A stretch of 63,841 nucleotides of DNA, the filler included, from Klebsormidium nitens (lineage: Eukaryota > Plantae > Klebsormidiophyceae): the NCBI GenBank assembly GCA_000708835.1. It is 5 parts of 5 records of this genome, joined end to end, with 100 filler letters (N's around TTAATTAATTAA, not from the genome) between each part and the next. Parts side by side here need not be neighbours in the genome. Positions count along the whole stretch, not along the records: positions 18,607 to 50,229 come from DF237755.1; 4 more parts are not named here. The stretch is one strand, 5' to 3'. Positions 19,850 to 50,199 of this stretch are shown here, piece after piece. Made by a program: the position numbers and the translations under genes. Positions within the stretch are counted from its first letter, which is position 1. Every line of letters starts with the position of its first letter. Below the pieces are notes generated by a model. The model worked only from the letters and a program-made list of their open reading frames with translations. It searched no databases and had not been told where the DNA came from.

Positions 19850-20660
19850 CTTGTACTTGGATGTTGGGCAGGGGCGGGATTCGGCGCACTTCTTCCTGTA
19901 GAAGACTTCCGGGGCACAAGAGCTCTCAAGAATGCGAAAAAGGAAGGCGATAATGAAGCATGAAACACAACGATTTGAAGCGACTCCCAACAAGAGAGAC
20001 AGAAAAGAGAGCGACTCCACCTAGATGTTGGGCTGGGGCGTAACCCGGATTCACTTCTTGCCTCGGCACATGTGAGACTTCTAGCATACGACATTTTTAA
20101 AAGGCAAAAAAAGGAAGGGGGCAGCTTAAGAAACGTCGAAAAAGGATACGAGCAAGACGAACCGAGCGTCACTCACCACCTGGGGCGTGACCCGGATGTA
20201 CTTCTTGCCTCGGGACATGTAAAAGTTCTAGGACGCATCGAATTCAAAATGTAAGAAAAGGAAGGGAGCTCCTTAAAACACCTCGAAAACGAAACGAGCG
20301 TCTCTCACTTGATGTTCGGCTGGGGCGTGACCCGAATGTACTTGCTGGAGGACAATAACGTATAAATGTTGGGGCAAAACAGCAAATCGGAACTACAAAT
20401 TGAAGGGACACGCAGCTCAGAAGAAGACGTTCTGGATACAGAATAAGAAGACTGAAAATGCTTCCCGCACCTAGATATTCGGCTGCGGCGTGACCCGGAC
20501 GTACGTCTTACCTCGGGACCTGTAAACTTCTGGACGCAACAACTTCAAAATGAAAATGCAGAAGGAAGAAGGGGCAGCTCAACACCTTGGAACATGATAC
20601 AAAAAAGACGAAACGAGCGTTTCTCACCTAGATGTTCGGCTGCGGCGTGACCCGGATGTA
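19850..20660 (-). repeat. Six ~155-bp tandem units, each carrying a decayed copy of the peroxiredoxin stop-codon region
   Basis: Plus-strand motif CACCTAGATGTTCGGCTGCGGCGTGACCCGGATGTACTTCTTGCC (real exon end, 20625) recurs at ~20468, 20306, 20174, 20018 and 19855. Confidence 0.85.
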
Positions 20661-23600
20661 CTTCTTGCCGGAGGGCACGTCAAAGGTGTCGTAGCCCTTG
20701 GGGAACTTCTCCTTGGCGGCCTCGTCGCTGATGGACGGCACGATGATCACCTTCTCGCCGTGGTGCCAGTTGACGGGGGTCGCCACGCTGTGCTTGGCCG
20801 TCAGCTGGAGCGAGTCCAGCACGCGTAGCACCTGAAGCGGGTTAACAGTAACTGTGAATCACGTTAAGACCAGGTCTGTCAAATGTTGATCGTAAGCTGG
20901 AAAGGGGTCGCACCGCTGTGCTTGGCCGTCAGCTGGAGCGTGCCAGCACGCGCAGTACCTGAAGAAGGGGGGTTAAGATAGTTTCGAATCAGGTTAGGGT
21001 CCGTTTGTTGCTTGACCGTCAGCAGAAAAGAGGCCAGGAAATCAGGTTACTGCTGGTGACAGAGGTGTGCTTGGCCATCAGCTGCAGCGAGTCCACCACG
21101 CGCAGCACGTGGAGAGGCGAGTAAAAGTCTCATTTGAGGTAGGGTTATGTTACGGCTTAAGGTTGCATTCAGATGAAAGAGCACAATAAAAAGCCGGGCT
21201 GTGCTTAAAAGGCAGCTGAGATGAATCCAGCACGTGCAGCAATTGGCGAAATAAGGTTGGTTTAGGTGAAGGTCGAGAATCCACATGAAGCGGAAGTCAA
21301 ACGTGAGCATTCTACAAGAAGCCCTAATAATATTAATAGTAATGACAACATAAGGGAGCGATCAGCGCATATATGAAGACTACCACCTTGTAGACTCAGG
21401 GTGAAAAGCACGGTAGTCCTGTCAGTACTGGGATAATTTTCTAGTAAGGCCAGATTTTACGTCAGAAGCCTTTTGACAACGATTTCTGATTTCCTGAGTA
21501 GAGTCAATGACAAGCATGTTCCTAGAGGCTACAGGATCGCAACACTTCGACTGAAGACTTTTGAGTCTTGATAAATCTTTTCGCGCTGGGGTCACTGGTG
21601 CAATCCAAGGCCAGTCACCCGTAATCGACGGAGAACCTTAACTTAGAGTTAGTAAGTCAAACAAATTGACTTTGCAGGTCACGCAATCAGATGATGCTGG
21701 CTTAGGGCGCCACGATTGCCATGCAGACTTATTTAGGGTCAACAATCTCTTTGAGAAGTCTACCGTTGTCGACAAAAGCACCGTACCTCCTCAAAGTTGC
21801 GACCTGTAGTTGCGGGGTACAGGATGGACAGCTTGAGCTTCTTGTCCGGCCCAATGATCCACACGGCACGTGCATTGGCTGGGAGGCCCTTGCTGCAAAA
21901 GAACCACGTGGCTCGGTTTCAAGTCGCTCCGTTCACCCTCCTCAAGTACTCAAGAAACCGGGATTCTAGCGAACCAAGAAGCTTCCGGGCCGGACTGGTT
22001 GGTCTCGTTGGACACTGCTTGGCGTCTCAAGTGAACAAACCAGTCAAACGAGACTTTGACTAAACGAATAATCCTAAGGACGAAGTCTTCTCAATCTTTG
22101 GAGAAAGCGAGTAGAGACTTGGCAAAATATCCTTACAAGGCACGACCTCAACGAATCTGCAATTAGTCAGCGAGGGCGATCAAGTTCAGCACATATAGAA
22201 GCTTGATGAGATTGTAGCGTTCCAGTACTTCAGAAAAGTCAGATCTCCCATCAGGCAAAGCACAGCTGAACATTGTTCGAATGCATAAGAAGCACGTATG
22301 GAAAGCTTAAGAAACATTGTAGGACTACAATGACTTGCCCTTTCAGATGTCTCGTCATTCACAAGCAGAGCTGATACATCGTTCCGTGGCTAAATGGCCC
22401 AAATGCCCAAGGAATGACCACAAGACTTGCGTGCAAGCTCCGAAAACAAGGTCCACGTTGTCTATTCGAAAATGCAACTTCAAGCAGTCTGGACCACAAA
22501 ACAAAGCCGAGCATTCCGGGGAGAAACGCCGGGAGACTTACGCATCCTTCTCGTCAGGGTCTAGGCTCCCCAGCTTGACGGCGAGCTCCTTCTCCGGGTC
22601 CGCAATGATGGGGTACCCAACCTTGACACCCGGAGTGTAGGTCTCAATGTCGGGAATCCAACCCTTGTGGGACTCGACGTCGTTGTGGCTAATGGCGGCC
22701 AACTTCACACCGCGCTTCTCAAACTCTGGATAGAAAGCGAATGCAGAGAGATGAACGGGGAGTTTTCAGGACTTTTGAGTAGAATTGACCAGCATCTGTG
22801 GAGTTCCTGCTCAGAAAAGAATACCGGAGACCCCTTTTTCTTGGTCAGGAATAAAATTCTTCTTGCTCCTCAGGCGATATATCAAGACAAGGTTGGATCA
22901 AATTCAAAGTTTGGAGGTTTACTATCTTCAAGCCACAGATTCCAACTCGCCAGTGTTGATCTGCTATAATGCGACACATCAGCAGGAGCTTTTACCAAAG
23001 TACTAAATAATTAACAACGCTGCTGTGGAATCATGTGCTGAGCCAATGGACGCTTTGCATACTGTAGCAATTCTGAGCACAGACAAAAAGTCACATACAA
23101 CTGTATTGACTTCTTCAAAATGAAATTCACAAAAGAACTGCAATAAACGAGGGGAGGGTGTCGCCATTTTCTTGTGGCTCTCAGAGGCTGGTATGCAAGT
23201 TTGCTCACCTGGCAAGTACTTGGCAACAGCCCCAAGCTCCGTGGTGCAAACTGCAGACGACAGCAGGTTTAGCAACTTTTAAAAGATAGTCTGGTAGAGA
23301 ACCTGATTGCAGAAGGTTGTCTTGGTTACAATGATCAAAGTCATGAAGCAAATTCAGTTTGGTTAAGCTTAGCTTTTGTTTCTTTAAACTTGAGCATATA
23401 AATGTGACGAGACCCTCTGATTCTGAATAAGAGTGGAAAGCCTGTCAATATTCTCACTGCAACAAACATCCTGCTGTTTTCCCCCATCACCCTTTTGTGT
23501 CATCCTTCTCTAGCTTCGTCCCGCAGGCTCCAGCAAGATATGCTTAAAGTACTAGGATTTTCCTCGCCATCCAAGATATGGATACAAAGATGCTGTATGA

Positions 23601-24537
23601 ACAAATGGCTCGTCTCCTCCGCTACGAAAAGAGATACGTAACAGAACCGATCAGAAAAAGCAACGCCGCAGGCTTCACAACATAAGTACGATGGAAGAGT
23701 CATGCTACTCTAGATGCATTATGTCCAGGGACTATGGGGCACTCATGTGTGAGGCATGGCCAGTTGGCTCTGACTTTTGAGTTGTGGTGACAGTGCTGAA
23801 TTGATAGGTTCTTGAAGTGATTGCGATGATAGCTGACCTGGGGTGAAGTCGGCAGGGTGTGAAAACTGCACATCAGAGGGTTCATACATCATTACAGGAG
23901 CGTCCAGATGAAACACAAGAAGAAAGATACAAAACGCAAGGGATTTAGAGTCTCATATACGTACCAAAATACGAACCAATGCATGTCAGACACGCCACCA
24001 TGTTTTTTTGCCATCAGAATTGAAAGCGTCCAAGGAAGTTCTGGGTCATCGGACCCCGGCACTTAGTTGACAAGCCCTGCTCCACTTAAGCTCAGCAGGG
24101 GGAAGAATGCAGCACATGAACACGATAAAGCCAATAGAAAATGGAGCATGGCCGCTGAGCATTTTGCTCCAGATTGGAGTGGGGTTTCTTCTACTCAGTA
24201 TGTGCAGCTGTCTCCTGGCTGTTTCTATCACCACTGTGTGAAAAAAACACTCTCGCTCTGGGTTTATTCTACTCATTATTCAGCTGAAACGGTATCTTCC
24301 AAAAGAAGCTGCTATTTTTAGGTGTTCTAAGAAGTGCATGAATTTCAAATCCACATGAAACCACCTTCAGTGCAATTGCAACTCAATTTGGTCCTGCAAA
24401 CTCAACTGGTGACCAGAAAAAAATGCACAACTTACCAAGATTGCCCATGACCCGTCAATGAACTCATGCCAATGGATTTGTCCTTGAGACGAGTCAGCAG
24501 TGAAATCAGGGAACGTGTCTCCCAGCTTGAGACCCAT
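20628..24537 (-). CDS. PER1: 1-Cys peroxiredoxin (PRDX6/PER1 family), 6 exons, 221 aa
   Basis: Exons 24537-24436, 23865-23838, 23250-23209, 22725-22542, 21892-21787 and 20831-20628 sum to 666 nt in frame with GT-AG introns. [74 protein letters not shown]; PVCTTE is the 1-Cys active site. Confidence 0.96.
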
Positions 24538-25616
24538 ATTCCTTGATCTCAGAGAACGTCGACAGAAGGTTTCTCTTCAAAGGAGGGCGCCTTCGGTTAA
24601 ACTTAAAGTTGCAATTGCAGAATCTGAAAAGTACCTACCGAGCTTCTGGAAAACGACGCAGAGCGAGCATACACTGATACAGGCCAGGGCCATACCGCAC
24701 TGCGGCCTCTATGCGCAACGGGTTAAAAGCTTATGTTTAAACCGTGACCCATTCTTAAAGCCTTCCTCCGTTTGCGTTAACCCAATTGACCTGAGGGCTC
24801 CTCCGTAGCTATCGCATGAGCGGTCAAACACAATAGGTTACCTGCTAACCGTCAAGGCCTTGAACCTATCCTAGATTCATGTACCTGACGGCTAGATCTC
24901 AACCGTCCGAGAGCTTGTTGACATCATCATCCACGGTCCTTCTTGGCCTAGTACTGTTCTATTGAAACCGTGGGATAAAGATTCTCAGAACTTGTAGAAA
25001 ACGGACGGCTTGCGTGAAGGCATAGCGTCAACGAGCGTGATTCGTCAGCTCGGCCGGCCAACGTGCATTGCGTGGGTTCTGATTTCTGCGAAGCCCTTGA
25101 TCAGTCTATTAGTATTACTCTGACCATGCGACGCAACGACACCCGAGTACCTTGCTACAAGGAAACTCTGCAGGACTTGTCGACACATTCCATGAAGGCT
25201 CGTTGAAACTTTGTTGCCAGCAGTGAGCACCCTGGAAACCGTTTGCAGATCCTCTGGCGGCAGAGTTTCACCCGCGCCTAAGCTTCCCACCGTGCCACGT
25301 GCAGCCCACCAATTGGTTCGGACTCGGAAGCGTCACAAAAAGCTCGTGCTTAGCAAAAGCGTAGGGCGGTATGGGCCCTAAGAAACGCACTGATTTGATT
25401 AAAGAACAGAGGGTTGCAGTCCTGTGCCAGCCCGTTGACGATCTGTTGACCTTGCAGATTAGCTAAAAAGACGTCGATTCTGAATGAAAGCCAGCAGAGG
25501 ATGTTCCTCAAAGCCACTGGTCAAGCTCCAATCTGCGACGGCGCCAGCTTGTGTGACCAATTGTGCTTTCGGTTGGGTTTCTACGCAATGAGGTGTAAAA
25601 GCTGCAAGGAGGAAGC

Positions 25617-28600
25617 ATGCATTGCCTTGCAAGACAAGCGGTAGGGACACCATCGATCAGAGCCACTCTTGCGTTGCAAACGGTCCAAGCTCGAAAGCCA
25701 TGCGCTTTCGACGGGGCGCACAAACTAAACGAGAAACCCTTCTTGCAGCCCGAGTGGAGACCCAGACCTCACTTGACCCTTTGTTTCCGGAAGCAAAAAC
25801 ATGGAAGGGTTGAACGCAGATCAAAGCTGCAATGGACAGGCAGCATCCGGTTTAGTCAATTTGCAGAGGGTACACACAATGCAGGCACTCAGGAGCCTTC
25901 ATCAGCTGCAGACCTTGTCAGCGAGCTCCTCAAGCTGAGTCAGCAAATCAAAGTTTGCCTCTGGTGTCCCCTGTGCGGCTCAGCCTCCCGCATTGCTGCG
26001 CAGATCCTTGCCTGGGAAAAGGATCTCACGCCGTCCGTCGAGAACCCCACCAGGGCAGAAGTAGGTGGACGAACAACAGCAGAGGGACATCCAACAGCTG
26101 AAAGGCGTTCAAAAGAGAATGGCCACTCAACAGGCAGTGGGAGTCCCAGACTGGAAAAGCGTCAGAACTTCTGGGGCCGTCCATTAGTTGCGATTGCCCT
26201 GGCATTGACTCTTGCGTTGCACCTCTCAACCTGCTCGCCATCACACGCCCACTCCCCAGTCCAGGAAGCCCCCTGTCTGGTTGCACCCTCTCCTAAGAGA
26301 ACACCAGCCGCCTCCTCAGCCACAAAATTAGACACCGCTGATGTCATTTGTCCGGAAGCTGAGGTCAACCACTTGAAGTCTGATGACAAAGCTGGGGGAC
26401 TTGGGTGGGGTGTGTTTGAATCTGCGGTGCGTCAGCAAGCATCAGGGGGAGTTGCGGCACCAGCCGGCGCAGAGGATAGCTCTGTGTTGCCAGAGGACTG
26501 CCCTCAAACTGTGGATTCGGGGCATTCGTACCACACAAGCGCACCGCAACACGCTTCTTCCAGCGCAAGTTCTGCGTTGAACCAAGCTGCAAGCTCGCCC
26601 AGAAACCCTTCAGATCCTCCAAACCCTGCGGGATGGGCGAGTCTCAGCGCTCTCTCGCACACCCCCCATGTTCCGCAGCTGAAACTGCCCCCCTGGTTGA
26701 CAGAGGCGCGCTTGCAGCAGTTTTTCGCGGAGACGGGGGAAGCATGGGGTAGAATGAATCTCACAATCAGCAGGAGCACAATCCATGCAATCGCCAGGGG
26801 GTGGTGGTTTGGCCTACCCCAGAACATTGAGATCTCTGAGCAGGTGAGGATTTCGTTTCCAGAGACATTGCTTTGAAGAGAGTCCCAGCAGAACACCTGT
26901 GTGACTGTGTCCAAGTTGTAGAGCACGGTGGTTGCTTGAAAATCTTCAGTGTCCATTCTTTCCTTCTTTCAGGTAAAGATCGAACCAAGGTACTTCACGA
27001 GCAACCGAGGTTCTTGTTTGAATCACGCTTGCCTTGAGGAGATATTTTGATACGCCGCAAACAACGCAATCCGGATCTGACGCATCGATGTGACGCCAAA
27101 CACCACCAGGCCAGTCGTTCACAGCAAAGCAATGTTTCTCGAATGCAAGCGATGTGATTAGGCTAATATTTCCCCTCTTCCAAATAGTTGTCGCAGGTCA
27201 TTATGTGAGGCCGTCGAGCGGGCGGACTCGATCTGTCTGAAGGACTGAGCATTTTTTGCTTTGGAAAAGCAGAAAGGGAAGAGAGGGCCTGAGCAGCAGT
27301 GCGCAATGTTCAGGGTGCGCACTTTCGTCTTCGGAGGACCTGAAGCTGACTGACTGGGGTTCGCCAACATTTTTAACGGCACGAGAAACGGGTTTAGCTA
27401 ATAAAGCGCTTCTTCTTTCCAAACACAGGCGTACGAGGTTGGCACGGGCGAGAGCCTTGGCAGCGTTGCGGGTTTCCTAGGCGTCCCCCTAGAGGACCTC
27501 AAGGCGACTAACCCGGGGGTTAGCAACCCGCTCCGCCCGGGTCAAAGCCTGCACATTCCGGCGAACCGGCAGCTTGGATTGGGAGAGAACCGGAAGTGGC
27601 GGAAACGGAAACGGAAACCCGGAAAAGGGCTGCTGGCGCTCAGTCACAGCGTGCCGCAGCCGGTGCGGGTGGCGCTGGTGTTCCTAACCGAGAAATGGGA
27701 CCGGGTAAGTATAAACCGGACTGGATAGATGCGCATGTTAAGCAAAGCACAGAGTATCTTTGAACGCGCTGAGACAAATTATACACCTCCATAGTATGTG
27801 CTTCTCTCCCAGAAGAGGACGTAAGCGGTTCCTGCTTTGCTGAGTTGTCTTGATCCCCAATATACAGAGAAGCTCTATTGTAATCAGATGCAACACCTGA
27901 TGATGTAGTCGCCTCCTTTGCTCAGTTGGTACCCGGAATTGAACTGCTTTCCGCGACTTCGATTAGTATCCGCTGATCTCGCGCTGTGTTCCCCAAGCCT
28001 AGCTCACTACTTTTCAGTTGGACCCTTCGCAAATTACATCATCTTGTAAGCACCAGTCTGTGAGGAGCTTCGAAGCGGGTCCGAAGAGCTAATATTCGAC
28101 AGAAGAACGGTGCAATTCTGTTAGCGAAAGAACGAGCTGATCAGAACAAGCGCTCCTGCAGTTGGCGTACCAGTGCCAGCTGGCGCTCGAGTGGCACCCG
28201 GCGAGCCACGTCATCATCTGCGTGGCAGGCATGGTTGCGATCGTGTTGGGCGGTGCGGTGTTCTACCGGCTGAGTACACAAATGGGATGGACTGAGGCCG
28301 TCTTCAAGGCGTGGATGTATGTTTACAATTCGCCTGGTGAGCTCCATGCCAAGCTGCCTCATACTTCAAATGATTCGCGCTTGCTCTCTTCTAAGTTCCG
28401 TCTACATCAACGATCGAGGGCTTTCAATCTGGTTTAGGGCGCTCGTCGTGAACACAGTCTCCGACGAAGCGGATCCGTTACACAAGCAGAGCCATTAGGA
28501 AGATATCGAGCACAACAGCAGAATAACCAGGAGCATAAGGACCCAAATCAGAGGGCCTTCCGTGACGGGATCAGAGGGCCTTTCCTGACTGAAGGGATGG

Positions 28601-31600
28601 AAGGAAAACGCGGACTGCAGTTTGCAGTCCCGAACCCCCACGCCGCGTGATACTCTGTGCGCGAGCAAACGTGGTCTGGTAACGTCACCGTCGGCGAGGT
28701 TTCACATGCCGTGCTCCGGACATGTTGGCTTGACTTTCGCCGTCGGCTGCAAAACGTCGGACCGCCGTTAACTCAAACTCGACGTTCCCGGTCGCGCGCC
28801 ACTTGAAAGTTGAGTATCAAGCGGTGTGGGGGTCTGGGAAGACTGCGATTCTCAATGCATGTTCTCCTTCCATCACCTCTGACTGTCCCTGGCACTTTCT
28901 CCTCCCAACTTATCCCCTTAGCCATTCTCGATTCTTGGGAATGCATTCTACATCACCGTTCTGAGTGACTTCTGCAATTTCTGCCGTACTCAAGTAACTC
29001 GTCTCAATCTTCCTCTTTGTGCAGGCGCTGACTTGCACCACGTGAAAGGCAGCGCCCGCCTGTTCGGCAGCATGCTGTTCATGGTCGTGCAGCACATCCG
29101 TCCGCTCCTTCTCTGGCGACACGCTCTCTTAAGTCTGTATGTTTTGAACACTTTCCGGAACACAATCTGACAGATTTGAGATCACTTCATCGTCGCAGGC
29201 GCTGATCTGCACCACGTGAAAGGGAGCGCCCGCCTGTTCGGCAGCATGCTTTTCATGGTCGGCCTGCTCGCGTCCGCCTTCTTCATCTCCGTCTTCACCG
29301 AGAGCATGCTCAACCAGGTGGACGTGCTTCGGAGCGGGAAAAGCCGGGTCGTGGAAAGCGGGCACGTGCTGGTAAGTATCTAACGCCCGGCTTGACCCTC
29401 CGTTACGCCTGGATGATGCGCCTGGTAGAAAGGTTCAATTCTTCGACGAGAATGCTCAACGAGACCATGCTCAACCGGATCCACGTGCGGCGGAGCTGGA
29501 AAAGCCAAGTAGTGGAAACCGGGCTCGTGCTGGTGAGTCCGATTGCCTGGATGATGCGCCCGGTAGTACGGTTATACGGTTAGCTCAGAACTTCACTATC
29601 GGAACAGCTTGGTGAATGAGAGCATGCTCAAAGGTGGACGACTTGCGTAGCGGCAAGAGCCGGGCCGTGGGCACGTGCTGGTGAGCTCACAGACCGGCAC
29701 AAGCGCCTGGAAAATCGAGCGGTACTGCGAGTGACACAGAGAATGATCCCCGCAAAGGGTGTGTGGTTGTGCTTCGCAGCTGCAAGAGGAAGGATCCGGG
29801 CATGTGTTGGTGTATCGAAGTGCCCGGTCGTAACAGCCGGCAAAATCAGCCGGTGATGCCTTCTTGTGTGCTGAGGCTGAAACTACTGAAGCGGATTGTA
29901 CTCTCAGGGCCCTATTCATTCCGCTCGAATACTCAGCTAGAACAACGCGCCGCTCCGCGTTTCATCTTCGCGCAATGCCGTAGCCCACGCAACCATTTAT
30001 ACATTTCATCATGGACGAAATTTTGCAGTCCGATAGAAGCTGTACCCATTCCGTTTAGGTTCTCGGCTGGAAGAACGCGACCGTTCCGCTGCTCCGCGAG
30101 CTGGCCGCCGCCGGAACGCCACCATCAGATCGATCAGCATTGAATTTGAAGCTGCGACTTGCAATCAGCTCTTGATTCAAACGCCCGTTAATTCGTTCCG
30201 TTCAGGTTCTTGGCTGGAACAACGCAACCGTTCCGCTCATCCGCGAGCTCGCCGCCGCCGGAAACAATCACGGCCCGGCGTCCCAGAGCAAGATCGGCGG
30301 ACACCGGACTGTGGTCGTGCTGGCGGAAAAGGAAAAGGACGAGATGGAAGCGGAGATCGCGCGCGCTATCTCGAAAGAGGAGCTGAAGCGCACGCGCGTG
30401 GTGTGCCGTGTTGGGGACCCGAGCGATCGGTATGCGCAGGTGAGGTCATAGCCCCTTTCGCTGACGTCACCTCTTGGCGTCACCTTGAAAGCTGTCCTTC
30501 TTAGACAAGTCCGATCTGGACCGATCGCCCATGAGATCGCTGCATAAGAATCATCACACAGTTCGAGTTCGGTTTTGAACGGCGATTAAAGTCGTGTCGA
30601 AAAACAAAGCTTGACGTTTGAAGCCGCCGTAGAAGGAGTAGAGTGGGAGCCGAGCAATTGGTCCAGACGGCGCTCCACACGGGGACGTGTGTTATGCCGG
30701 TCAAGGAAGCGACCATGCGCTAGTCTTCTCACGGGTACATTTCGTTGAATAGTGACGGAGTAGTGCTTCAAAAACTAAATCGAACCCGCAACGAAGACAC
30801 TCGAACCGCAGTTGATCGTCTAAAACGGGAGCGCAGGCGGGGTGTTGACTAGAGAGAGGTTGCACTTTTGCCGCAATCATGGGCTTACTCTTGAATGCAA
30901 GCGGTCGAACTTGCAGGAAGTTACCACTTGCGTGAAATGGTCGTCATTGGAAGCCGCGTTCCGTTCACGAAGACCACTGCTCCAATTTACGCTTTTGGTC
31001 CATCCGTATGAAAATGGTTAGTGTGCTGGCTCAAAATGCGCGTTTCGTGCGCGCACACTTGTGGTTGGCGGCTGAGCGCGCGCGTTCCGTTGTGGTGCTG
31101 CCGGAAAGGCGAGGAAGCAATCGTTGAATCGAGGCGCATTCAAAAAAACCTTGTTCCTGCGCGCCTACAGTTGTGGGTGGCGGCTGAGCGCGCGCGTTCC
31201 GTCGTGGTGCTGGCGGAAGACGACGAGGAACCGGAAATGGCGGACACCAAGGCGCTGCGCGTCGTGCTCGCGACCAAGGGAAGCGTCGCCAAGCAAATGC
31301 GCGCGCGCTCGCGCCAAAAGCTGGCCGAGAGCCTGGTAACAGATTTCAAGCTTGTACCTCATCGATGAATCGAGCTGACGTTAAAACAAATTATTCAAAC
31401 GAGGACGTCATGAGAAAATATTGGGGGCCGCTTTGCCGGACAGGCATGCGAGCGGTCGCCCCGATGCAGGCGGAGGCAGGTTAAAAACCTAGGTCACGAG
31501 TATAAAGTCCGGCTCGAAAGAAATATTAGGGTCATCTCAGGTTACTCAGACATGCGAATCCCTCCAAAGATCGAGTCCCTCAAAGCAACAAATTTTCAGC

Positions 31601-34600
31601 ATAGCATCCGTGTTACCAAACATTACTTGGACCGGAGGAAAAAGGCCGTAATGACGAGCACTTCTCGCTGGACTAGCGGGCAAAGAGCTTGCATGTGACC
31701 GATCAACGGCCAAACTCTTTTTGGAAAAGAAGGATATCAGATCTGCAGGAAAAACGTGCAGCCCCTCGGAATTGGATTGGCAATATTTATCTAGTTGAGT
31801 ATAATCAAGTTCGGAGTGTGAGAAGAGGTCCCGGTTGTCGTACAGAAGCTTCCGCTTGCAGTTTGGCGCTTCTTAATTGTCTAGAGGACGTTCGTCGGAA
31901 CCTGTGCCGGGATGACATGATATTAGGAGTGCATTTTCTTCTGCGAAGCAGGTTGTTTCACGGCTTGCGAGGTCAGAGGACTGCCAAGCTGGAAGTCCAG
32001 GCAACGTTCTTGGAACACCAAAATGGTAGCTGGAAGTCCAGGCAACGTTCTTGGAACACCAAAATGATCAGACTGGATATTAATTGAATGACAGACCCAC
32101 TGAAGTTGATCTGACGTCATGAAAACCATATTACCAGCAGTCGGAGGCGCGCCTGGCGAGCCCGAGCGGCCGCGACGCCAAGAGCGCGCGCCACATCGAC
32201 AGCCGCGCGACCGTGGAACTAGAGGAGGGAGTCGAGCCGACGCTGCCCATGGTGGTGCAGGCGCAGACCGCGCGCGGGCACCACCTGGTGAAGCTCGCGG
32301 GGGGGGACCAGGTAAGCCAAACTTTGTTAGTTATACCCCCCCATTCCAAGGACGTTGTAATTGAAAGGAAGCCCGGTGCTGCTACTTTCTTAGAGACGCA
32401 AAGGCATGCGGGCGCGACCTTAAAGCTTGCGGGGGAGGCCAGAAGGTGAGGATACCTGCGAGGTTCGTCCCGCACTTTCGAAGGATTTGGCCCTCCATCT
32501 GTAATCTGTGTAAAGGAACTAGAGAGGAGCGTCGCGAGCGGAGTCCTGCCCTTATTGGGGCAGGCGCAGACCTCGTCAAGCTCGCGGGGAGTTACCAGAT
32601 GTGCGAGGGGCCTTGTTTTGACAGTCCTTAGTGTAAGTGTTTGGGGCATCCTTGCCAGTGGCATGGCTCAGAAACATGGCAGAGAGCGGCCATAGTGCAT
32701 GAAACGCTAGGGCTTCTTCCGAAAGTTTAATGTTTCTCTCGACCTTTTGAACAGGACCTCTAGCCTGCGAGTCGTCAGCCCCTGATATCGAGCACCTCAA
32801 TGGATCGAGGTTCGCATTCCAAATCTGCACCCACTATAGCCCCTATCTAACCCAATCCGTCCCAGTTCCTTCCCCTTATTGTCCACTGCATTGAGCTGAG
32901 TGACTATATTGGCTTGTAATCTGGACTGCGCCATCAGTAATGAGTTTCGTTGCCACGTGTCAGGTCACGACGGTGGACACGCGCAAGCTGGTGGGGCGGC
33001 ATCTGGTGCAGTGCGCGGTGCAGATGCGCGGGCTGGCCGCGGTCATGCGCAGGCTGCAGAGCTTCGACGACGAGGAGTTTTACATCAAGTGAGTCTCAAC
33101 GGAAGCGAAACTTATATCGCATCAAGTGAGTTCCAAAGAGGGGGAAGCTTACATCAAAGTGAGTGTCAAAAAGGAGGAAAAGAGGAGTAATCTCCTCTTT
33201 GCATGCGCTGCAAGTACTGCGAATGCGCATTTGTGCAAGAAAGTGGATGGAGGAATCTGCCAGTCCTTGGGTTCTAATTTGTTTGAGACATGCCGCGTGT
33301 TTGCCCAGGGTAAAGATAGATCCCAAAGACGGCGTATTAGGAAAGCACGTTCAGATGTAGACCAGCTCAGAAAGCAGTTTCGATACAGCGTTACATCACT
33401 CAACGGGCGAGGAGCTATCTGCTCTTCTGGTTCTCGAAATAGATACTCTTCTCTTCCGTTGAAAGACTTGTGTAATTGCCATTCATCCTTTCTCCGGCGG
33501 GCGTCAAAAACGCTCCTCTTACAACCTGCTCGGTCTTTTGAGAGCCCATCATGAGGACATTCCCGGGCCACGTTTGCCGACGTCAGCGCCGCGTCATCGC
33601 AGGCAGTGGCCGAGCCTGACGGGGCGCACGTTCGAAGAGGTCTGCCGGTCGTTCGTGGGCGCGGTCCCGGTGGGCGTCGTGGACGGGGACAAGCAGCTGG
33701 TGAGAGATCCCCCTGGCTTCAAAGCAGATTTCCAATTTGAAGTATCTGAAGATTGAAAACATTGAGCAACTCTGTGGTCTTTGTTTCAAAGAGGTCTGCC
33801 AGTAAACTGTGGTGCGGTCCCGTGGAAGTCGTCTGCAGCTGGTGAGGGCGTCCCTCCTCTTGAAAATACTTCTTCACTTTTAGAAAAGTACCTTTAGGAG
33901 TAACATCGTCGACTGGTTTGAGATTTTGTTTCCTCGGATGCATTTCAAGCAATTTTAAGACAGGAAGAACTTCCTGTTATCTCTTTAAAACCTGAGCCCA
34001 GGAGGGGACGCACGGACGAGTACCTAAAGCGTATCGATCCTCAAAGTGGTCGATCGGTGCCGGTAAAGAACGCGGCAACTCTGCCCAGCATCCGCTGTGA
34101 GGATGTGACTCGATTCTTCGGCGATCGGAGTGTTTTGAATGTAAGACCTAGCAAGAGTTAAGGACTACGTAGTCCATGAAAAGCTCTCTGATTCAAGGCA
34201 TATCCCCGGCAACAAATGAGCAACCAATGTCTCCAAAACTTTTTACATCTCGGCAAACTCCCAAAACCTCCTTCGCAGCTCCTGTTGCCGCCTTTCGACC
34301 GCGTGATGCGCAAGTCGGACTACGTCGTCGTGGTTGCGGACGGCAAGGACGGGTACCGTCCGTTGTCCGCCCCAATCCGGCGGATCAACACCGCGCTACC
34401 CAAGTGGACGGAACCACCAAACGTGCCCGGGAAGTACCTCATCGTGGGCTGGGGGCCCACCCTGGTAAGCGACCGGCTACTGCCTCTGCGCTTTCGTTTA
34501 TTGTTTTGCCACACCTTATATGATTCTCGACACTGCATAATACGGGTTCCTGGATCCTGTTCTTCAGTTAAGAAATTTTTGAAAGCCCTTTAGGGCGCTT

Positions 34601-37600
34601 CTACTCTCCTCGCAAGTCGTCACAACGCTACGAGCACGGACAACTCCACCGCGGAGAAGAATGCTTACGTCAGATATGATGACTTGCGTGCTAAGAGAGG
34701 GAAATCTATGAGGCATATAAAAGGGAGGTCAGACCTTGCCCATTTTTGCATCTTTGCAAGCTTGGGAAGGCACTACCAAACAAACAACAGTGCACGAATA
34801 GAGCAGAACAGCCGTAGCTCGCAGCTTAACCGCAATTGACAAAATCATGGCGGATTGACTAACCTGGTAGATCTCGGCAGCAACTTGAACGTGCTGATTA
34901 CAGCTGCGTATCAAAACGCTGCAAAACAATCCTTCTCGCAAACTCTTTGCAGACGCCACGCAGAGAAGCTTAGTCATTCAATCACAGCTGACTGACTGAT
35001 GTACAATCGGGGTTATCTTTCAGGTCGACATGATAACCGAGATGGATAACCTGGTGAACCCGGGGAGCGACCTGTTGATTGCCGCTGCGCTTCCGGAGGC
35101 CGAGATGCAGCGCCGGCTCTACGCTGGGGGGATCATGACGTCACCGTGCGTGCGGAAAGGCTGCTTCGCGTGCAAAGGTGAGCTGAGGGCCGGTCCGCTT
35201 CATGATTGACATTATCTTGAAAATCAAATATGTTAAGAGGCTTCTTGCTGAGTCCGTTACCCGCAATTTGAGACGCAGGCAATCTGTGAAGGAACCTGCT
35301 CTCTTATTGCTGCCGGAGGTGGAAGCGGAGAAGTCCGTTTAGTTTATGCAGACTCGCTCGATTCTCATTGTGTATGAGAGTCGCGTCTGAAACGTTCACT
35401 CGATCTTTCGTCGTTTGACCTTGCACTCAACTGCTTGGAGCGCTTTAGCGAGGACGGAGTCAGCGGGCCTTCTCTCGCCACCAGAAGGTTGAAGCAAAGC
35501 GATTTTTGATCGTCAGACTGAAGTTCGTTTCGTCTTTTCGACGCTAATCCTATGCGCTACCTTGTCTTAAAACACATGTTTAACCTTAGACTTCAGTCTT
35601 AAATGGATCAGCACACAGTAAAGGTTTCGAGGCGACCCTAAATCTGCAGAAACATTCAAAGTGTCGTCTCACATGGGAAAGATGGGAAGCAACTTGGGAA
35701 GACAATAACAGGTGAATGATTACTTTTCAGTTCGGAAATAAGCCAGACGAAGGATGCGGACACGTGTCCTGCAGGCAACGATCACGGCAGCCCCGTGGCG
35801 TGCCTGTCGCAGCTATCGGTGCACCTTCACACCACCCTACCGCCCGGCCAGGAGGAGAGTGTGAATAGCCCCGCCGATGCAGAGAGTTCGAGCGGAGATC
35901 TAGAGTCCTTGGGCCCACTCGCGAGCTCGACCCAATTTGAAGCCGTCATTTTGCTGGCCGCAAAATATGCGCCGGACGGTACTTTAGACGCGTACGGAAG
36001 GTGAGGGGCGACCAGGGTTCGTGTTCGTATCACTTTCAGGTCGCCTTTGTTGGACCTTAATACCAGGTTGACAGATTCCGTTCAAAGCGTCTCGTTTTAC
36101 GGGTGGAGAAATGTGCGCTGGACGGCACTTTTGGACGCGTAAGGAAGGTGAGGGGCGACCAGGAACCGTGTTTCTATTGCTGTCAGGTCGCCTTTCGTGT
36201 GACCCCTTGTCACGAATGACGCAGTTCGAGACCCGTCATTCTGCTGGCGGCCTGATATGCGCCGGACGGCACTTTTGACGCGTACGGAAGATGAGGGGCG
36301 CTCTTCCCAGGTCGCTTTGTATCTTCAGGGATTGCGGTAGATTGTTCGTATAAACGTGTGAAGCCGTCATTTGGGTGGCTGCAAAACGTCCGCGGAATAA
36401 GTTGGGAGCGGTGCGCTGCGAAAGGGTTGTCATTCTGTTGGATATAAGGTGGGGGAAGAGAAAAGGAAAGGGGCACCAATATGCAACTCATTGCCTTGAG
36501 AGCAGTGTCCTACGTCTGCTCTCTTATGCAGCAAGCGACCTGGCCATTTAGGTTGCCACCACGAATGGCCAGGAACAAGTTCCTGAACTCCTTCCCGGAA
36601 AAGTTGAGAGCTTTGAAGCCGTCTAAAAACCTGATCTTCAATCCCTAAACCTTGAACTGGGATATGATGACCAACACCAGAAGGTAGTTTGGGTCTAGAG
36701 GTTTCGGTTTTTATTCTACAATGTTCTGGTGACTGTGGACTCTGGGTTTCCCACTTTAGTGTACCGGTACAAACGTTTGTACCGTTTGAGTTCGGATGTG
36801 CTTTCGGTCCTTACACCACCCGATTATATAAATAACCTAACAAATGATCCCTGTTCTTGCAGTGACTCCTCGTGCCTGGCGACGATCCTGCTGCTGCAGG
36901 AGAAGGCGGAGCTGGACGCGGAGAGGGATCCCCCGGTCGAGGACACGCACATCGTCGCCGAGATCGTGGATCGCGCCACCAAGAAACTGGTTAAGGTGCG
37001 GTGAAGACCCTTGCGTCTTTATACTTTCTTAATGCTGGTTGGCTTAACCCGACCTGGTAGAGAATCCCTTGTCGAGGAGCCACACGTCGTCGCATATATT
37101 CTTGGATCATGCCACCAGAAAACTGGTCAAGGTGAGGAGTCAAGATTTCCGTCACCGTTTGACGAAACGCTTTTCTCGAATCCGGGGTCCCCAATTCCTG
37201 ACTCACGTTTTTCTTGATACGTGTCAGCTCGTTTATCGACCGATGCCATGTCTTTGTTGTCATTGTCAAAACGAGCCTACTTTATTCCTCCGTTATGCTG
37301 AACACCCCCCCGCTTGCCACGTGTCAGGTCGTCAACCGTGACGTGGACTCCGTGGTGGGCACGGAGATGATGGCACGTGTCCTCGCGATGGCCAGCGAGG
37401 ACCAGGCCGTGATCGCGCTCTGGCGGGACCTGCTGAGCGCCGACGGGAAGGACGTCTACCTCAAACCCGCACGAAGGTTAGCATAACCCATGATTCTATC
37501 TTTTTTAATCAACTTTTCGCTTCTTTACACTTCTTTACATAGTTTGCCCAAGGTCAGCTTTACACAAACTTTGGTTGTTCAAGAAATAATCTAACATAAC

Positions 37601-39400
37601 ACGAGGTGGAACATTTTTGCTCTCTGACGCGACCTGCTGACCGCTGACGGTAAGAACGTCCACCTTAAACCCGCAAGAAGGTTAGCTCAACCTTTTTAAG
37701 CGGAATAATGTTTTCCAACTTTTCCAAGCGAACCTAGGGCCAGAGTCAGTATGACTCAAGCTTTGGTTTTCTTCCGATTGGGAGGGGTAAAGTTCGTTTG
37801 CGCTTTGGCGCGACCTGATTAGGAGAAAGTCTACCCCAGATCAGCACGAAGGTTAGCTCAACCTTAAAACGCTACTCTCCACGCCTTCCCTTGTGTCTTT
37901 CCGTCAAGCTTTTCCGATCCTCTGGTGAGACTAAACCCTCTGGAACCCTTGTCTTGCCTGACGATTTCCTTCTACCTAATTTTGGTAGAAGCAACATGAC
38001 AGCTTTTGAATACTCGACGTCTAGAGATAGGGAGTCGTCAACGGCTGATGCAGGTTAGATCAGGTGGCCATCTTCTTTGGAGACCTTTCTGGTCACAATT
38101 CGTAAACGATTTAAGCTCTGTAAATGGTTCCGCAAGCAACTTGCTGCTAGTTAAGCTGCTGAAACTCTTCGACTAACCCCCAACTAGTTGCACGGAAAGC
38201 CGAGACTCTTCGACTAACCATCAACTAATGAGGGTGGTGTTGTCTCTTTCCAGCAGCCGTTTCCCTGCTCAACGAGTCTCCTGTGACCAAGTATGTTGAC
38301 GAGAAACTAAGCTGCAACCCCCTTTTGGTATCTGCGGCTAACCCTCGTTGTTACCTGTTAACCAGGTACGTTGGGGAGGGCGAGGCCATCTCATTCTGGG
38401 AGCTCGCGGAGCGCGCGCGCTTACTGGGGGAGGTCGCACTCGGATGGCGGACCGCAGCTGACGACATCGAGATCAATCCGCCCAACAAGGTATGCTCCTT
38501 TCCGTTTGCGTCTCTGCTTTTCCGGTGCGTTTCCAAAGACTCCCTCCTGTGCCTAGCTTCTGAAATCGCCCAACTGATAAGGTGCGCTCCTTCTGCGGCC
38601 CTGCGACTTTAAAGGGCCTGATAAGGTGAGCTGATTTTCGATCTCATCCCGGTTCAACTGTTCGGCCGGACATTCTTCTCAAGATCCTCAGTGAACCTTT
38701 CGTAATCAGCCCGCCCACCAAGGTGGGCTCCTTTTCGTTTGCGTCTTTCCGTGTAATCTGCTGAATTTGGATAGTGCACCAAGACTCCCTCGAGCGAAAC
38801 CTTCCGACATGAACCCGCCGAATAAGGAGGGCTCCTTCTGCTCCACGTCGCTCCATTCCGTTCCCTCCTGGAAGATCCTTTTGTGCCTTCCTTTCGAGTC
38901 GTCCGCCCAAGGAGAGCGATCGAAAACAGTCGACCAACTAGGGGGGCTCGCCTTTTCTCCGAAGTGGTTTTTGTGAATCATTCTTCTCACGGAGCCGCTT
39001 TGAGGTCTGTTTCCCTTCAGCTCATATCGATGGTTACGGGCAGTTCAAACCTGCGTTTGCGGCCAGAGAGCCCTAGCTCTTGCAACTTTCATATTTACTC
39101 AATGGAAAGGCTTCGAGTCGCACTATAACAGTGGGCAGCTTTAGCTTGATTCTTTGTGCTTCTCCTTAATGGCTTTGCAATTTCCTCTGTTTTTCTCGCC
39201 TCTCTTCACTTGCGCACTTCAGGCCATGTGTAAAATCAGCTCTTCAGCTTTCATTTCGAATCGAGGTCGATACGACTCTCGCTTCAGACAAATCTCGCTT
39301 GCCGAGTCACCTGATTGACCTGATTTCCCTTTTCCCGCAGGCTCTTTGTCGCCAGTATGATAAGGAAGACGCGATCGTGGTCATTTCAGACTGCCTTTGA
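25617..39400 (+). CDS. CASTOR/POLLUX/DMI1-family cation channel (2 TM + pore + RCK domains) with long N-terminal extension and an in-frame LysM domain; 16 exons, ~1224 aa
   Basis: Exons 25617-26843, 27429-27704, 28162-28336, 29199-29371, 30206-30439, 31171-31335, 32141-32311, 32964-33088, 33603-33699, 34279-34464, 35024-35177, 35775-36000, 36863-36995, 37328-37476, 38366-38489, 39341-39400 sum to 3675 nt with matching phases and no stop. Family motifs: RLAY, LRSGKSRVVESGHVLVLGW, VVVLAEKEKDEME, KALRVVL, LVKLAGG, EEFYIKQWPSL, DSSCLATILLL, IVAEIVD, INPPNK. Exon 1 is the least certain part. Confidence 0.88.
27432..27560 (+). other. LysM domain within exon 2 of the channel gene
   Basis: YEVGTGESLGSVAGFLGVPLEDLKATNPGVSNPLRPGQSLHIP fits the LysM consensus Y-x-V-x-x-G-D/E-S-L-x-x-I/V-A...L-x-x-x-N-P...L-x-P-G-Q-x-L-x-I-P. 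Confidence 0.9.
29025..38840 (+). repeat. Intronic partial exon duplicates ('echoes') throughout the channel gene
   Basis: Copies near 29025, 29445, 29612, 30059, 31059, 32405, 32510, 33105, 33140, 33785, 36100, 36210, 37060, 37620, 37800, 38560, 38700 and 38805, each overlapping a splice junction of the adjacent exon. Confidence 0.85.
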
Positions 39401-41897
39401 GACAACCATCTGCAAGATTGAACATCCAGGGCCAACTGCAGGGCCAAGTGCTGAACAGTCAACGAATATTGAGGATCAAATATCTGGGATACGCGCCTTT
39501 ATAGCTCTTTGCGAGCAACCTGCCAATTTTAGATAGAGAGTGAAGCTTAAAAGTGAGTCCAACTTAGTTGACGCTATACGAACTTCATCAAACTTTCAAA
39601 TTTCCCTCTCCCTCTAAAGCCCGGCGGGATGCTTGAAAAGCGATGTAGTCGTTTTATAGTATAGTAGACCCGCAAGTAAGCACGCACTCGGACCTTCTAG
39701 AAACCAGCAAAGTTGCTCAAAGGTGCTGAATTATAGTTCTTTTGACCAACTTGAGGACCATAGTTCGAAACTACCTAGGTTGCTCAGTGACCACTATATA
39801 GTTCGATCACACAATCGCGAGAGAAATTGCCAGCTGTACTAGAGCTAGCTTTGTTTTGCGCTCATTTGAATCAAGGCTGCCATGCAAACGACGGTATAGA
39901 ACATTGCCGCTTATGCACAGTACAAAGATCGTCCCGGCATCCTTCTCCGAGTTGAGATGCAAATTATAATGCTACGCGTACCGTGTATAACCTGACTTTC
40001 TAGCGGAAAGACTGCCAGCATTTATGGAATATTGGTACTCGCTAGTACGTACAGGCTAAGTGGACGACCGTAGCGGAGTAGAGGCGGGGGGCAGCCGATC
40101 ATTATGGTACGTACAGTATACTGAGCAACAACAATCAAACATGGCGGCTGGCATGCAGTGCCATGCAGTATACACTCATGATCGATCATGAAGGGTCCCG
40201 GGGCCGCATTGCCTGATCATCAAGCTTAGTAACTGCATAGCCTAGTCAAACTCGTTCCAAACCGAAGATGGTTTTAATTTACGGATCCTCGACGACCGAT
40301 CGCATGATCATTTTGCCACGCAACCAGGTCATAGATTGTATATATGCAGTACTCAGAAATGTGGATTTCACAAAAAACTTTTGCCTGTCGCACTTCGAGT
40401 GCAATGGAATGTAAGTTGGCGGCTGGTGACCTGAACGTACGAAAAAGACGTATTTAAGTCAAGGAAGTCGTTTTCGACATGCAAGTGAGTCGAACATGTG
40501 ATTTCTAATCTTAAAACAACCAGGCTAAGACCCCGACTTACTTTCAAGGGATGCCCACTAGTTAAGGAGTTCACAGATATGCAAGTACTGCCATCGGTGG
40601 ACGCTTCAACAACCAAACTTTTGCTAATCAGGGCCTCTAAGGACGAGATTGAAGCTCGTCTACAGAGACGGAATAGCCTTATGGCCTTGCAAATGAGGCA
40701 CTAAGTTCATTATGCCTGGTAATGTAACCAAGCCCGGGTGAACAGCTCGCGAGAGGAATCCGACGTACGTCGACAATCAATGGATCCACACCCGTACTAA
40801 ACAAAAGACGTGGTTTCTACGTTCAGGCTCACATATGATTCAATGACCAAAAGACCGATCGTTTTGCTCGTACATCGATCTTACTCGAGTCCATCGCCCG
40901 GCGCCTCTTGAGCGTCCCTATCGAACACCACACGGGGACAGATTGCTTGCACAGATTGTTTGTCTACAATGACTACGAGACAGGACTTAGCTCTTTCCAA
41001 TACGAGGTTCAGTGAGGTTGCCTCCTCATGCACACGGCTGACTAGCTGTCTGAAATGTCGTCATACGAGCTAACACGCCTTCTATAAAGATAGACTAGTT
41101 GCTCACTCACGGAGTCTCACTAAACTTCTGAGGAAGTCCTTCGAGCGATTCCCAAACCAATACTGACCAGACAATGCAGTTTCAAGTTTTTGGAAGTCGA
41201 GGTCCAGTGACGTCGCCTTCTCGTACGGCTGACTGCCGTCGATCTTTGCATGATGAATAAACACGTCTGATCGCTCTGCCCTCAACAAAGTACTCACATA
41301 CGCAGGTTTTTGACGAAACCTCGCCGCTTTCAAAGTACTCTCCCTCAACAAAACCCTAGCCGTCGAAACTTCATCAAACCTAAGAACGCGAGACTTCTAC
41401 AGAGCCGCAAGATCTAACTCTGCCCCTTATATCCCAAGCCTTTCCCTTCGGGCCCGCGTCGGCAAACCCTCCAAACGCCCCCACCTAACCCGGAAAAACC
41501 TAGTACCCATCCGTAAGTTACAGCCCCTTAACCCCGCCGCAAGCTGGCAAGCACAGCCAAGCAGCCCCGCCTCGGAGAGCCCCTCTGGGCGGTCGAAACG
41601 CCTCAGCTTAAACTCCCCTAACCCGCAAAACCGTACGACGGGTAACTGCCTCTTAGCCCGCCGGGACATAGCAATCAATCCGCCTCGGAAGAGCCCCTCT
41701 GGGCGGTTGAAACGCCTCCCCTCAAAACCCTAAGCCCTGAAACCTGACGAAGGATTACTGCCCAACCTTAAACCGTACGACGGGTTACTGCCCCTTAACC
41801 CTTCGCGCCTGGGCATACGGCCCCGCCTCGAGGAGCCCCTCCGGGCGGTTCAAACGAACCGACCTCAAACCCTAAACTCTCGTAGCGTGAAATAGGA

Positions 41898-49710: not shown

Positions 49711-50199
49711 CAGTGTTTCCCCTAATTATTTTGATTGCTGGCCGCCGGGCCGGCCGGGGCCTGAGTTTGCCGGCCCGTTGGGCCGGGCCGAGGTCGCCAT
49801 TGCCGGCCCAAGTCCCGGCAAAATATATGGAATTTCCGGGCGCGCACCCCATATATTCGACTTTTACATTACCTTCATAAGTCTCTAGATTATCTACGTG
49901 TAAAATTAAATTGACCAATTCCTACCTGTCCTACCGAGGGGTTCATTGGGGGATCTTCTGGCCAGAAGTCCCCGGGGGAGGGTTTTTTTCGACAAAAACC
50001 TTAGTATCTCCTGAAATCCTGATCGTTTTGCACACTGAATACGATGACAGGGCCAGCTATGAACTTTCATTGCCGGCCCAAGAGGCCGGCCCGTGACCGG
50101 CAATGCCGGCCGGATGGGCCGGAGGCCGGCCCCCATTGCCGGCCCGGTTTGACCATTGCCGGCCATTTACCAGAGAGTGGGCCGGCAGGGGAAACACTA
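49711..50199. mobile_element. Non-autonomous hAT-like DNA transposon
   Basis: TIRs CAGTGTTTCCCC (49711-49722) and GGGGAAACACTA (50188-50199), with dense subterminal GGCCGG clusters at both ends. No matching 8-bp TSD seen. Confidence 0.6.

Follow-up and report, generated by a model that had tools for sequence, protein, structure and literature searches.

A LysM domain joined in frame to an RCK-gated channel subunit in the alga Klebsormidium nitens

Can a LysM domain form part of an ion channel, and what might it do there? The question is raised by a locus of Klebsormidium nitens (GenBank assembly GCA_000708835.1) in a stretch of 63,841 nucleotides (nt) made of five joined parts (hereafter the window, along which all positions are counted); the locus lies in the part from DF237755.1, positions 18,607 to 50,229. 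A preliminary description, made from the sequence alone, had proposed that a LysM-encoding exon reads in frame into a CASTOR/POLLUX/DMI1-family ion channel. These channels and the related PEC channels produce nuclear and plastid calcium signals in plants; to our knowledge, little is known of how they are controlled apart from the binding of calcium at the RCK ring. LysM domains of the fold discussed below bind N-acetylglucosamine (GlcNAc) oligomers in solved complexes. We found that a single expressed gene of the window encodes a LysM domain joined in frame to an RCK-gated cation channel subunit. The kind of channel is already known; what appears to be new is the LysM on a channel of this superfamily.

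The RNA evidence consists of assembled Logan contigs from four runs (X1, X5, X8, and X10) of four studies, aligned to 24900–30800. Single contigs of 2489, 2512, and 2494 nt (X1, X5, and X8, respectively) span exons 1–5 with 0 mismatches, and X10 has identical joints across four overlapping shorter contigs, also with 0 mismatches. The joints lead from 26843 to 27429, from 27704 to 28162, from 28336 to 29199, and from 29371 to 30206; all four are GT..AG, and the contigs extend past the end of exon 5 (30439) into sequence located at 31171, which belongs to exon 6. Their 5' starts are at 25409 (X1), 25355 (X5), 25486 (X8), and 25199 (X10). The preliminary description had suggested RNA across both ends of the LysM exon as a check; with both joints present and the frame continuous, its claim that this exon is physically part of the channel open reading frame (ORF) is confirmed. 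Logan contigs omit rare variants; occasional skipping of the LysM exon (exon 2) would thus be invisible in them, and the main form includes it. In 14 RNA runs, 36–45% of the sampled words from 25600–31500 were present, which is about the exon fraction, and in four runs the share over 31100–39900 was 0.20–0.23, again matching the expected exon fraction.

The complete model contains 16 exons with a coding sequence of 3720 nt (1239 residues), extends over 25617–39400 on the + strand, and ends with a stop codon at 39398–39400. Exons 1–6 are read-verified; exons 7–16 were modelled from conservation (tblastx against related contigs), GT/AG sites, and phase continuity. The related contigs carry three relatives of the gene: P0001 (on L001/L004) and P0151 (on L003), which are ORF calls on Joint Genome Institute (JGI) metagenome contigs of 65 and 68 kb, and P0152, on the 8-kb Logan contig L002. 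The joined frame is open and continuous through the RNA-supported exons and the full 1239-residue model. At its end (28336), exon 3 is in phase 1 and leaves one base of a split Gly codon that is completed at 29199. The features of the gene are as follows.

25199..25616, + strand: 5' untranslated region (UTR), minimum extent, at least 418 nt (start of the X10 contig)
25617..26843, + strand: exon 1, 409 residues, lineage-specific N-terminal extension (RNA contigs)
26181..26237, + strand: anchor helix TM0, residues 189–207 (hydropathy)
26649..26843, + strand: conserved pre-LysM block (..LKLPPWL..ARLQQF..GEAWG.MNLTI..RGWWFGLP..), 61–71% identity to relatives
27429..27704, + strand: exon 2, residues 410–501, LysM, polybasic linker, and start of the pre-M1 helix (RNA, Pfam, model)
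27432..27560, + strand: LysM core (Pfam PF01476, model, Foldseek, and the ratio of nonsynonymous to synonymous substitution rates, dN/dS)
27591..27629, + strand: polybasic stretch RKWRKRKRKPGKG (alignment of four species)
27657..27704, + strand: first part of the amphipathic helix predicted before M1 (..PVRVALVFLTEKWDR) (model, low confidence; hydropathy)
28162..28336, + strand: exon 3, pre-M1 segment, M1 (28210–28266), pore helix and start of the filter (28288–28336) (RNA joints)
29199..29371, + strand: exon 4, last part of the filter (..G ADLHH), M2 (29237–29293), and link to RCK (RNA joints)
30206..30439, + strand: exon 5, start of RCK1 (RNA joints, PDB matches)
31171..31335, + strand: exon 6, RCK1 (RNA contigs run into exon 6; PDB matches)
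32138–32311, 32964–33088, 33603–33741, and 34279–34464, + strand: exons 7–10, including Castor_Poll_mid (tblastx, splice sites, phase)
35024–35177, 35775–36000, 36863–36995, 37328–37476, 38366–38489, and 39341–39400, + strand: exons 11–16, RCK2 and C-terminus (tblastx, splice sites, phase)

Exon 2 follows an acceptor (acacag/GCG) at 27429 and precedes a donor (CGG/gtaagt) after 27704. It comprises 276 nt (92 residues), contains no stop, and is in phase 0 at both ends, so the coordinates and signals proposed earlier were borne out. Pfam LysM (PF01476) matched residues 2–44 of the exon over profile positions 1–43 of 43 with 27.4 bits (E-value 3e-6), above the gathering cut-off of 20.9 bits; the LysM of P0151 scored 27.9 bits. 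The LysM alignment comprised exon 2, the three orthologues, and 16 LysM domains from protein-library matches. For the exon 2 alignment, AlphaFold2 predicted a strand at residues 2–3, helices at 10–17 and 21–27, and a strand at 40–41, with a predicted local distance difference test (pLDDT) score of approximately 80–85 over residues 1–44; the 30 residues after the LysM, including the polybasic stretch, were predicted to be disordered, and a helix of low confidence was placed at 77–91. In a Foldseek search of the PDB, the top matches were all LysM domains, with a root-mean-square deviation (rmsd) of 0.9–1.4 Å over 43–46 residues, a probability of 1.00, and template modelling (TM) scores on the target of at most 0.86. 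They included MltD, chitinase LysM domains of fern, horsetail, and Volvox, CtCBM50 with GlcNAc3, NlpC/P60 LysM, CEBiP, and ectodomains of the CERK type (CERK1). Foldseek matches to the LysM in AlphaFold DB clusters were generic LysM proteins only.

The consensus positions Y.V..GE/D-S-L...A...GV....L...NP......PGQ.L..P are retained, and so is the groove-lining consensus of other LysM domains (G-[DE]-[ST]-L, N-P, and P-G-Q), which reads G-E-S-L, N-P, and P-G-Q in exon 2. The domain has two residues fewer than most others of its family in the helix 2–strand 2 loop, and no Cys is found in exon 2. With a Pfam score above the cut-off, a predicted fold within about 1 Å of solved LysM structures, and these conserved positions, the LysM of exon 2 is genuine, and the earlier claim of a full LysM holds. 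Within the polybasic stretch, RKWRKRKRK and GKG are identical in four species, and a P is replaced by M in L002. The pre-M1 helix continues across the splice junction into exon 3 (..EKWDR/LAYQCQ..) as LAYQCQLALEW; the R-L-A-Y at this junction may, as the preliminary description proposed, recreate the R-[IL]-A-Y segment of the channel family.

The identity of the channel was examined through its soluble domain. DMI1 and CASTOR were the top PDB matches for five exons of this domain and the sole ones for exons 6 and 14. Exon 5 matched DMI1 (7vm8) at an E-value of 1.4e-5, as well as CASTOR (6o7c), and exon 14 matched DMI1 at 3.9e-5. Exons 5, 6, 8, and 14 are collinear on DMI1 (positions 10–70, 79–112, 144–181, and 430–476), and the soluble exons are about 40% identical to DMI1 and CASTOR in the aligned stretches; the solved CASTOR and DMI1 structures comprise the soluble domain and lack the membrane part. 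Castor_Poll_mid (PF06241) was detected in exon 8 (21.9 bits, profile 2–34) and exon 9 (18.1 bits, profile 36–62), which are adjacent in the protein; each match is below the cut-off of 26.7 bits because an intron splits the domain. Look-alikes of exon 5 in the ESM Atlas are Slo-like RCK domains, confirming only that the domain is of the RCK type. Hydropathy indicated a two-helix pore (M1, 2.55; M2, 2.09), after which comes the tandem-RCK soluble domain. On these sequence matches, the channel belongs to the CASTOR/POLLUX/DMI1-PEC superfamily (IPR010420), which agrees with the family assignment made earlier and is a placement at the superfamily level.

In CASTOR/POLLUX/DMI1 proteins, four helices are predicted, of which the final two make up the pore, and a tetrameric tandem-RCK ring faces the cytosol and nucleosol; their filter, ADS/AGNHA, is highly conserved and its Asp is essential (Kim et al., PMC6697748). 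The protein studied here shares with them (6o7c, 6o6j, and 7vm8) the two-helix pore, tandem RCK, and Castor_Poll_mid, and a tetrameric ring is expected. Unlike them, it has a 500-residue N-terminal extension with a LysM, three conserved helices, and the filter NSPGADLHH. The filter stretch YNSPGADLHH is identical in the relatives and does not match ADS/AGNHA; an A-D pair is present in it, whose alignment with ADS/AGNHA is uncertain across a length difference of two residues. Since the filter differs and three rather than four helices are conserved, strict orthology to the symbiosis channels is doubtful. Streptophyte members of the superfamily form three clades, PEC, CASTOR/POLLUX, and a sister of CASTOR/POLLUX that contains only sequences of non-vascular streptophytes and one of Selaginella (Völkner et al., PMC8644588). 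The channel could equally fit this third clade.

How old is the association between LysM and channel? The LysM exon was compared with 1.84 billion representative proteins, a search that reached LysM-plus-linker sequences resembling exon 2. Among the matches listed, one similar protein was found, P0001, with 74% identity over all 92 residues; the remaining ones were multi-LysM proteins of the bacterial kind, and no near-identical protein from K. nitens with the LysM exon was among them. A word-indexed protein search, which compares candidates of 0.55–1.75 times the query length, returned no K. nitens protein for the ORF of the relative and, for exon 5, its own exon and two relatives only. The deposited annotation may therefore lack the fusion and perhaps even the complete 5' half of the gene. 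Neither of two metagenome scans, one with exon 4 (pore) and the other with the LysM exon, yielded a relative. We found no LysM-channel fusion described in the literature, in agreement with the preliminary description, and PMC6697748, PMC8644588, and PMC4015805 are without a LysM on a channel.

The same architecture, which had been proposed as something to look for in algae, recurs in L001/L004, L002, and L003, where an exon-1-like region is followed by the LysM exon and then, 0.4–1.3 kb downstream, by the M1 exon. L001, L003, and L004 also bear downstream channel exons with 75–100% identity (exons 12–13 on L004, 59–74%). By tblastx, identity to the relatives was 81–84% for exon 3 and 91% for exon 4, 75–98% for exons 7–10 (L001 and L003), and 95–100% for exons 14 and 15 (L004). 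Nei-Gojobori estimates of dN/dS for the LysM core were 0.075 against L002 (dS 0.55), 0.096 against L001 (dS 1.13), and 0.095 against L003 (dS 1.21), and those for the linker were higher (0.18–0.21). The G+C content at third codon positions (GC3) is 0.76 for the LysM exon, 0.68–0.95 for the channel exons, and 0.55 for exon 1; a recent foreign origin of the LysM exon was ruled out, as its GC3 matches that of the channel exons. Such conservation indicates that the LysM is an old, selected part of the gene in this algal lineage and no recent insertion. Both the window and L002 have intron 1 (26844–27428), which is missing in L001 (10001–11374) and L003 (10001–11554), where exon 1 and LysM are one uninterrupted ORF; it was gained or lost within the algal group. 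This divides the earlier suggestion of exon shuffling: the symmetric 0/0 phase stands, whereas the absence of intron 1 in two relatives speaks against a separable module. Clean skipping, also suggested, does not fit, as exon 2 holds, besides the LysM, the polybasic linker and the first part of the pre-M1 helix, so that skipping would delete channel sequence.

The possible function of the LysM depends on the side of the membrane it faces. Comparison of Kyte-Doolittle hydropathy across the four species revealed three conserved hydrophobic helices, TM0 (residues 189–207), M1 (518–536), and M2 (573–591). TM0 scores 1.76 in the window and 1.6–2.0 across P0151, P0001, and P0152, and it is the sole conserved helix before M1. 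Two weak peaks occur in the window only: that at 113–131 (1.32) is polar in the relatives, and that at 477–495 (pre-M1, 1.38) carries E, N, R, and T in them. A membrane helix between LysM and M1 was considered and rejected, the stretch at 477–495 being unconserved. In channels with a two-helix pore, the pre-M1 segment and the gating ring after M2 share one side of the membrane. As no conserved helix separates the LysM (410–455) from M1, the LysM would therefore lie beside the RCK ring, and the LysM, the polybasic stretch, and the pre-M1 helix should all face the gating-ring side. With three helices, the N-terminus would be on the side opposite the RCK.

Exon 1, which had no family match in Pfam, opens with a basic segment poor in acidic residues, followed by a long Ser/Thr/Ala/Pro-rich stretch. 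Its conservation in L001, L002, and L003 covers the region of the start and several blocks, including a Cys-containing block 3' of TM0 that reaches about 26303 (67–72% tblastx identity over 26175–26303). The first 70 residues contain 15 K+R and 4 D+E, none of the latter preceding position 32, and hydropathy revealed no signal-peptide core at the N-terminus. No kinase domain is present in the 1239-residue frame. When the loop and LysM of a relative (321 residues, 6 sequences) were modelled by AlphaFold, confidence was restricted to the LysM, and the pre-LysM block was of low confidence.

The RCK-gated channel subunit thus has, in order, a basic N-terminus, one conserved anchor helix, a loop of about 310 residues, M1-pore-M2, and tandem RCK, and the loop ends with the single LysM, the near-invariant polybasic stretch, and the amphipathic pre-M1 helix. 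In our best explanation, to which we give a probability of roughly 55%, the LysM of this subunit would lie on the gating-ring side and serve there for docking or sensing. Should the channel be tetrameric, as CASTOR is, each would carry four LysM domains. The domain would most likely dock the channel to, or sense, a GlcNAc-containing polymer or fragment on the RCK side. Bacterial stators of the MotB/OmpA-like kind are ion-conducting complexes with a wall-binding domain, in which wall binding positions the complex and is coupled to its opening; glycan docking might likewise fix the position of the channel or bias its gating. The stator may thus serve as a working analogy for a glycan-anchored channel, although its folds are unrelated to those of the channel (an OmpA-like domain in place of LysM, and a MotA/MotB stator in place of a two-helix pore with an RCK ring), and its wall-binding part is periplasmic, opposite the cytoplasmic parts.

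The compartment is a more tentative matter: the envelope intermembrane space of the plastid is our first choice, at less than even odds and barely ahead of the cytosolic or nucleoplasmic face of the nuclear envelope or endoplasmic reticulum (ER), where CASTOR/POLLUX are found. It is favoured because the RCK domains of PEC1 are located there, because the canonical LysM ligand would occur there, and because DipM provides a precedent. PEC1 is a plastid envelope protein whose RCK domains lie in the intermembrane space, and its helices have been inferred to be odd in number (PMC8644588). Our protein resembles PEC1/PEC2 in its superfamily, its odd count of conserved helices, and the predicted placement of RCK and N-terminus on opposite sides; it differs in having a LysM, none being reported in PEC1/2 (PMC8644588). 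The three (odd) helices and an N-terminus that by composition may be a transit peptide fit a plastid reading. DipM, a LysM protein, was localised to the intermembrane space of the glaucophyte plastid at the peptidoglycan layer, and it has homologues in charophytes, moss, and Selaginella, which retain genes for peptidoglycan synthesis (Miyagishima et al., PMC4015805). Plastid peptidoglycan is present in glaucophytes and inferred for the charophyte, moss, and lycophyte lineages with these genes. Like proteins of the DipM/NlpD type, the one studied here is a nucleus-encoded LysM protein, and DipM sets a precedent for this compartment; unlike it, DipM has several LysM repeats and a LytM/M23 hydrolase and no channel.

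Several points weigh against this explanation. The transit-peptide-like start was judged from amino-acid composition alone, and N-termini of the DMI1 type were once misread as plastid signals (PMC8644588). The only solved relatives of the channel are DMI1 and CASTOR, so similarity to them cannot separate the clades. The invariant polybasic stretch resembles a signal for nuclear localisation or for sorting to the inner nuclear membrane, or else a juxtamembrane patch that binds lipids on the cytosolic side, and a stretch of this type favours a cytosolic or nucleoplasmic face for the LysM. Moreover, intracellular LysM domains without a known glycan ligand exist, and trypanosome mitoribosomal LysM-like folds were among the Foldseek matches.

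A possible, if less probable, alternative is that the protein is a channel of the nuclear envelope or ER with a cytosolic or nucleoplasmic LysM, the polybasic stretch being a nuclear-localisation or inner-membrane sorting signal. The partner of the LysM would then be non-canonical (a protein, an O-GlcNAc-type mark, or a small GlcNAc molecule), or the LysM would only stabilise the loop. The collinear matches of the soluble exons to DMI1 and CASTOR, the cytosolic and nucleosolic orientation of CASTOR/POLLUX soluble domains (PMC6697748), the invariance of RKWRKRKRK, the lack of a signal peptide, and the intracellular mitoribosomal folds all agree with it. It has to accommodate three conserved helices in place of the four predicted for CASTOR (PMC6697748), with which a basic N-terminus of 188 residues must enter the lumen without a signal peptide, as well as NSPGADLHH in place of ADS/AGNHA. 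In addition, we know of no LysM glycan ligand in the cytosol or nucleoplasm. Returning to the docking explanation, a stricter version, in which the LysM is a direct ligand sensor and a GlcNAc molecule bound to the four LysM domains opens or closes the pore, is improbable in our view; its ligand candidates, a muropeptide, a peptidoglycan strand, or a chitin-type oligomer, are proposed with equally low expectation.

The preliminary description had taken the fusion to connect both ends of the common symbiosis pathway. In the corresponding explanation, the LysM would sense chitin, Nod/Myc-type factors, or peptidoglycan outside the cell and gate the channel directly, uniting receptor and symbiosis calcium channel. 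The fusion itself, the binding of GlcNAc oligomers by LysM domains of the same fold, and the presence of symbiosis channels in the superfamily would make this attractive. LysM receptors are extracellular proteins with a signal peptide, three packed, disulfide-bridged LysM domains, and usually a kinase. The protein shares the LysM fold with NFR1/NFR5, LYK3/NFP, CERK1, and CEBiP, of which CEBiP and CERK-type ectodomains were among the structural matches; unlike these receptors, it has one LysM with no CxC bridges or Cys pairs in or around it, no signal peptide, and no kinase. The LysM is also predicted on the gating-ring side with no helix before M1 to bring it outside, the filter is unlike that of CASTOR/POLLUX, and we know of no precedent for an RCK ring outside the cell. 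We thus consider extracellular perception very unlikely, the protein should not be read as a cell-surface receptor, and the proposed link between the two ends of the pathway was not upheld. Hardly more probable is that the LysM is a structural relic, a folded spacer free of ligand that aids folding, assembly, or trafficking of the channel. It occurs in a single copy with a shortened helix 2–strand 2 loop, and similar LysM-plus-linker sequences were seen, among the matches listed, only in a narrow lineage; however, dN/dS of about 0.08–0.10 in the LysM core versus 0.18–0.21 in the linker and the retained groove-lining positions argue for more than a spacer. Least credible of all is an artefact, in which the LysM exon stems from a separate upstream gene or from chimeric contigs. 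Chimeras do occur, as the 5' end of the X1 contig bears 31 unrelated letters encoding the start of ubiquitin (MQIFVKTL), and no deposited K. nitens protein with exon 2 was among the matches listed. Nevertheless, the acceptor of exon 2 (to exon 1) and its donor (to the M1 exon) are both used in four independent assemblies, the frame is open over 1239 residues, and three relatives show the same order, with exon 1 and LysM forming one uninterrupted ORF in two of them. A separate upstream gene or a chimeric contig was rejected on the use of both splice sites, and the separate upstream transcript that had been named earlier as a possible objection was not seen.

A putative carbohydrate-binding module beside the gating ring, under strong purifying selection in an algal group, offers a concrete and testable handle on how these channels are controlled. 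If the LysM faces plastid peptidoglycan, the relic bacterial wall of algal plastids would be tied to ion transport across the envelope; with a cytosolic or nucleoplasmic orientation, a new intracellular role of LysM domains would be indicated. Should the direct-sensor version be true, the protein would be the first carbohydrate-gated ion channel of the superfamily, and either the condition of the plastid wall or a GlcNAc signal inside the cell would be coupled directly to cation and calcium fluxes without receptor kinases.

Several additional observations concern the gene and its surroundings. The 5' UTR contains four upstream ATGs (25371, 25484, 25501, and 25588) before the conserved start at 25617, and translational control is possible; an in-frame stop is located at 25596–25598. 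At the start of exon 7 (32135–32143), a NAGNAG tandem acceptor (ccagcag/TCG) is found, and use of 32138 or 32141 would give one Gln more or less. A separate RNA contig of 216 nt (depth 3.8, X1 only) maps within intron 3 at 28752–28967 and might be unspliced precursor or a small independent transcript. Upstream of the channel gene, at about 24367–24537 on the - strand, is a peroxiredoxin (AhpC-TSA) gene, recognised by eye in the window from its N-terminal peptide rather than via Pfam; it is syntenic in L002 (1392–1697) and L003 (6799–7302). An IFT46 gene (flagellar transport) is located downstream of the channel in L004.

Introns adjoining real exons hold diverged tandem copies (61–94% identity) of segments of the exon-intron junctions. 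Those of the acceptor side are found upstream and those of the donor side downstream; a good many retain AG or GT, and the spacing is mostly 110–300 nt, often 142–147. These copies and similar repeats are located as follows.

29021–29087, 29456–29538, 30049–30116, 31049–31106, 35943–36300, 37415–37863, and 38467–38850: copies of junction segments
19995–20669, 20789–21251, 41526–41962, 42082–42298, and 44033–44379: similar short-range tandem repeats elsewhere in the window

RNA contigs use only the junction copy that is joined to the full exon. In the relative, L004 (1–16000) has junction copies at other junctions. The duplication of junctions looks like a genome-wide and recurrent process, which may lengthen introns and create decoy splice sites. 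Finally, a cluster of GC-rich repeats with palindromic units of the GCCGGCC type is located at 49748–50165, near the end of the piece.

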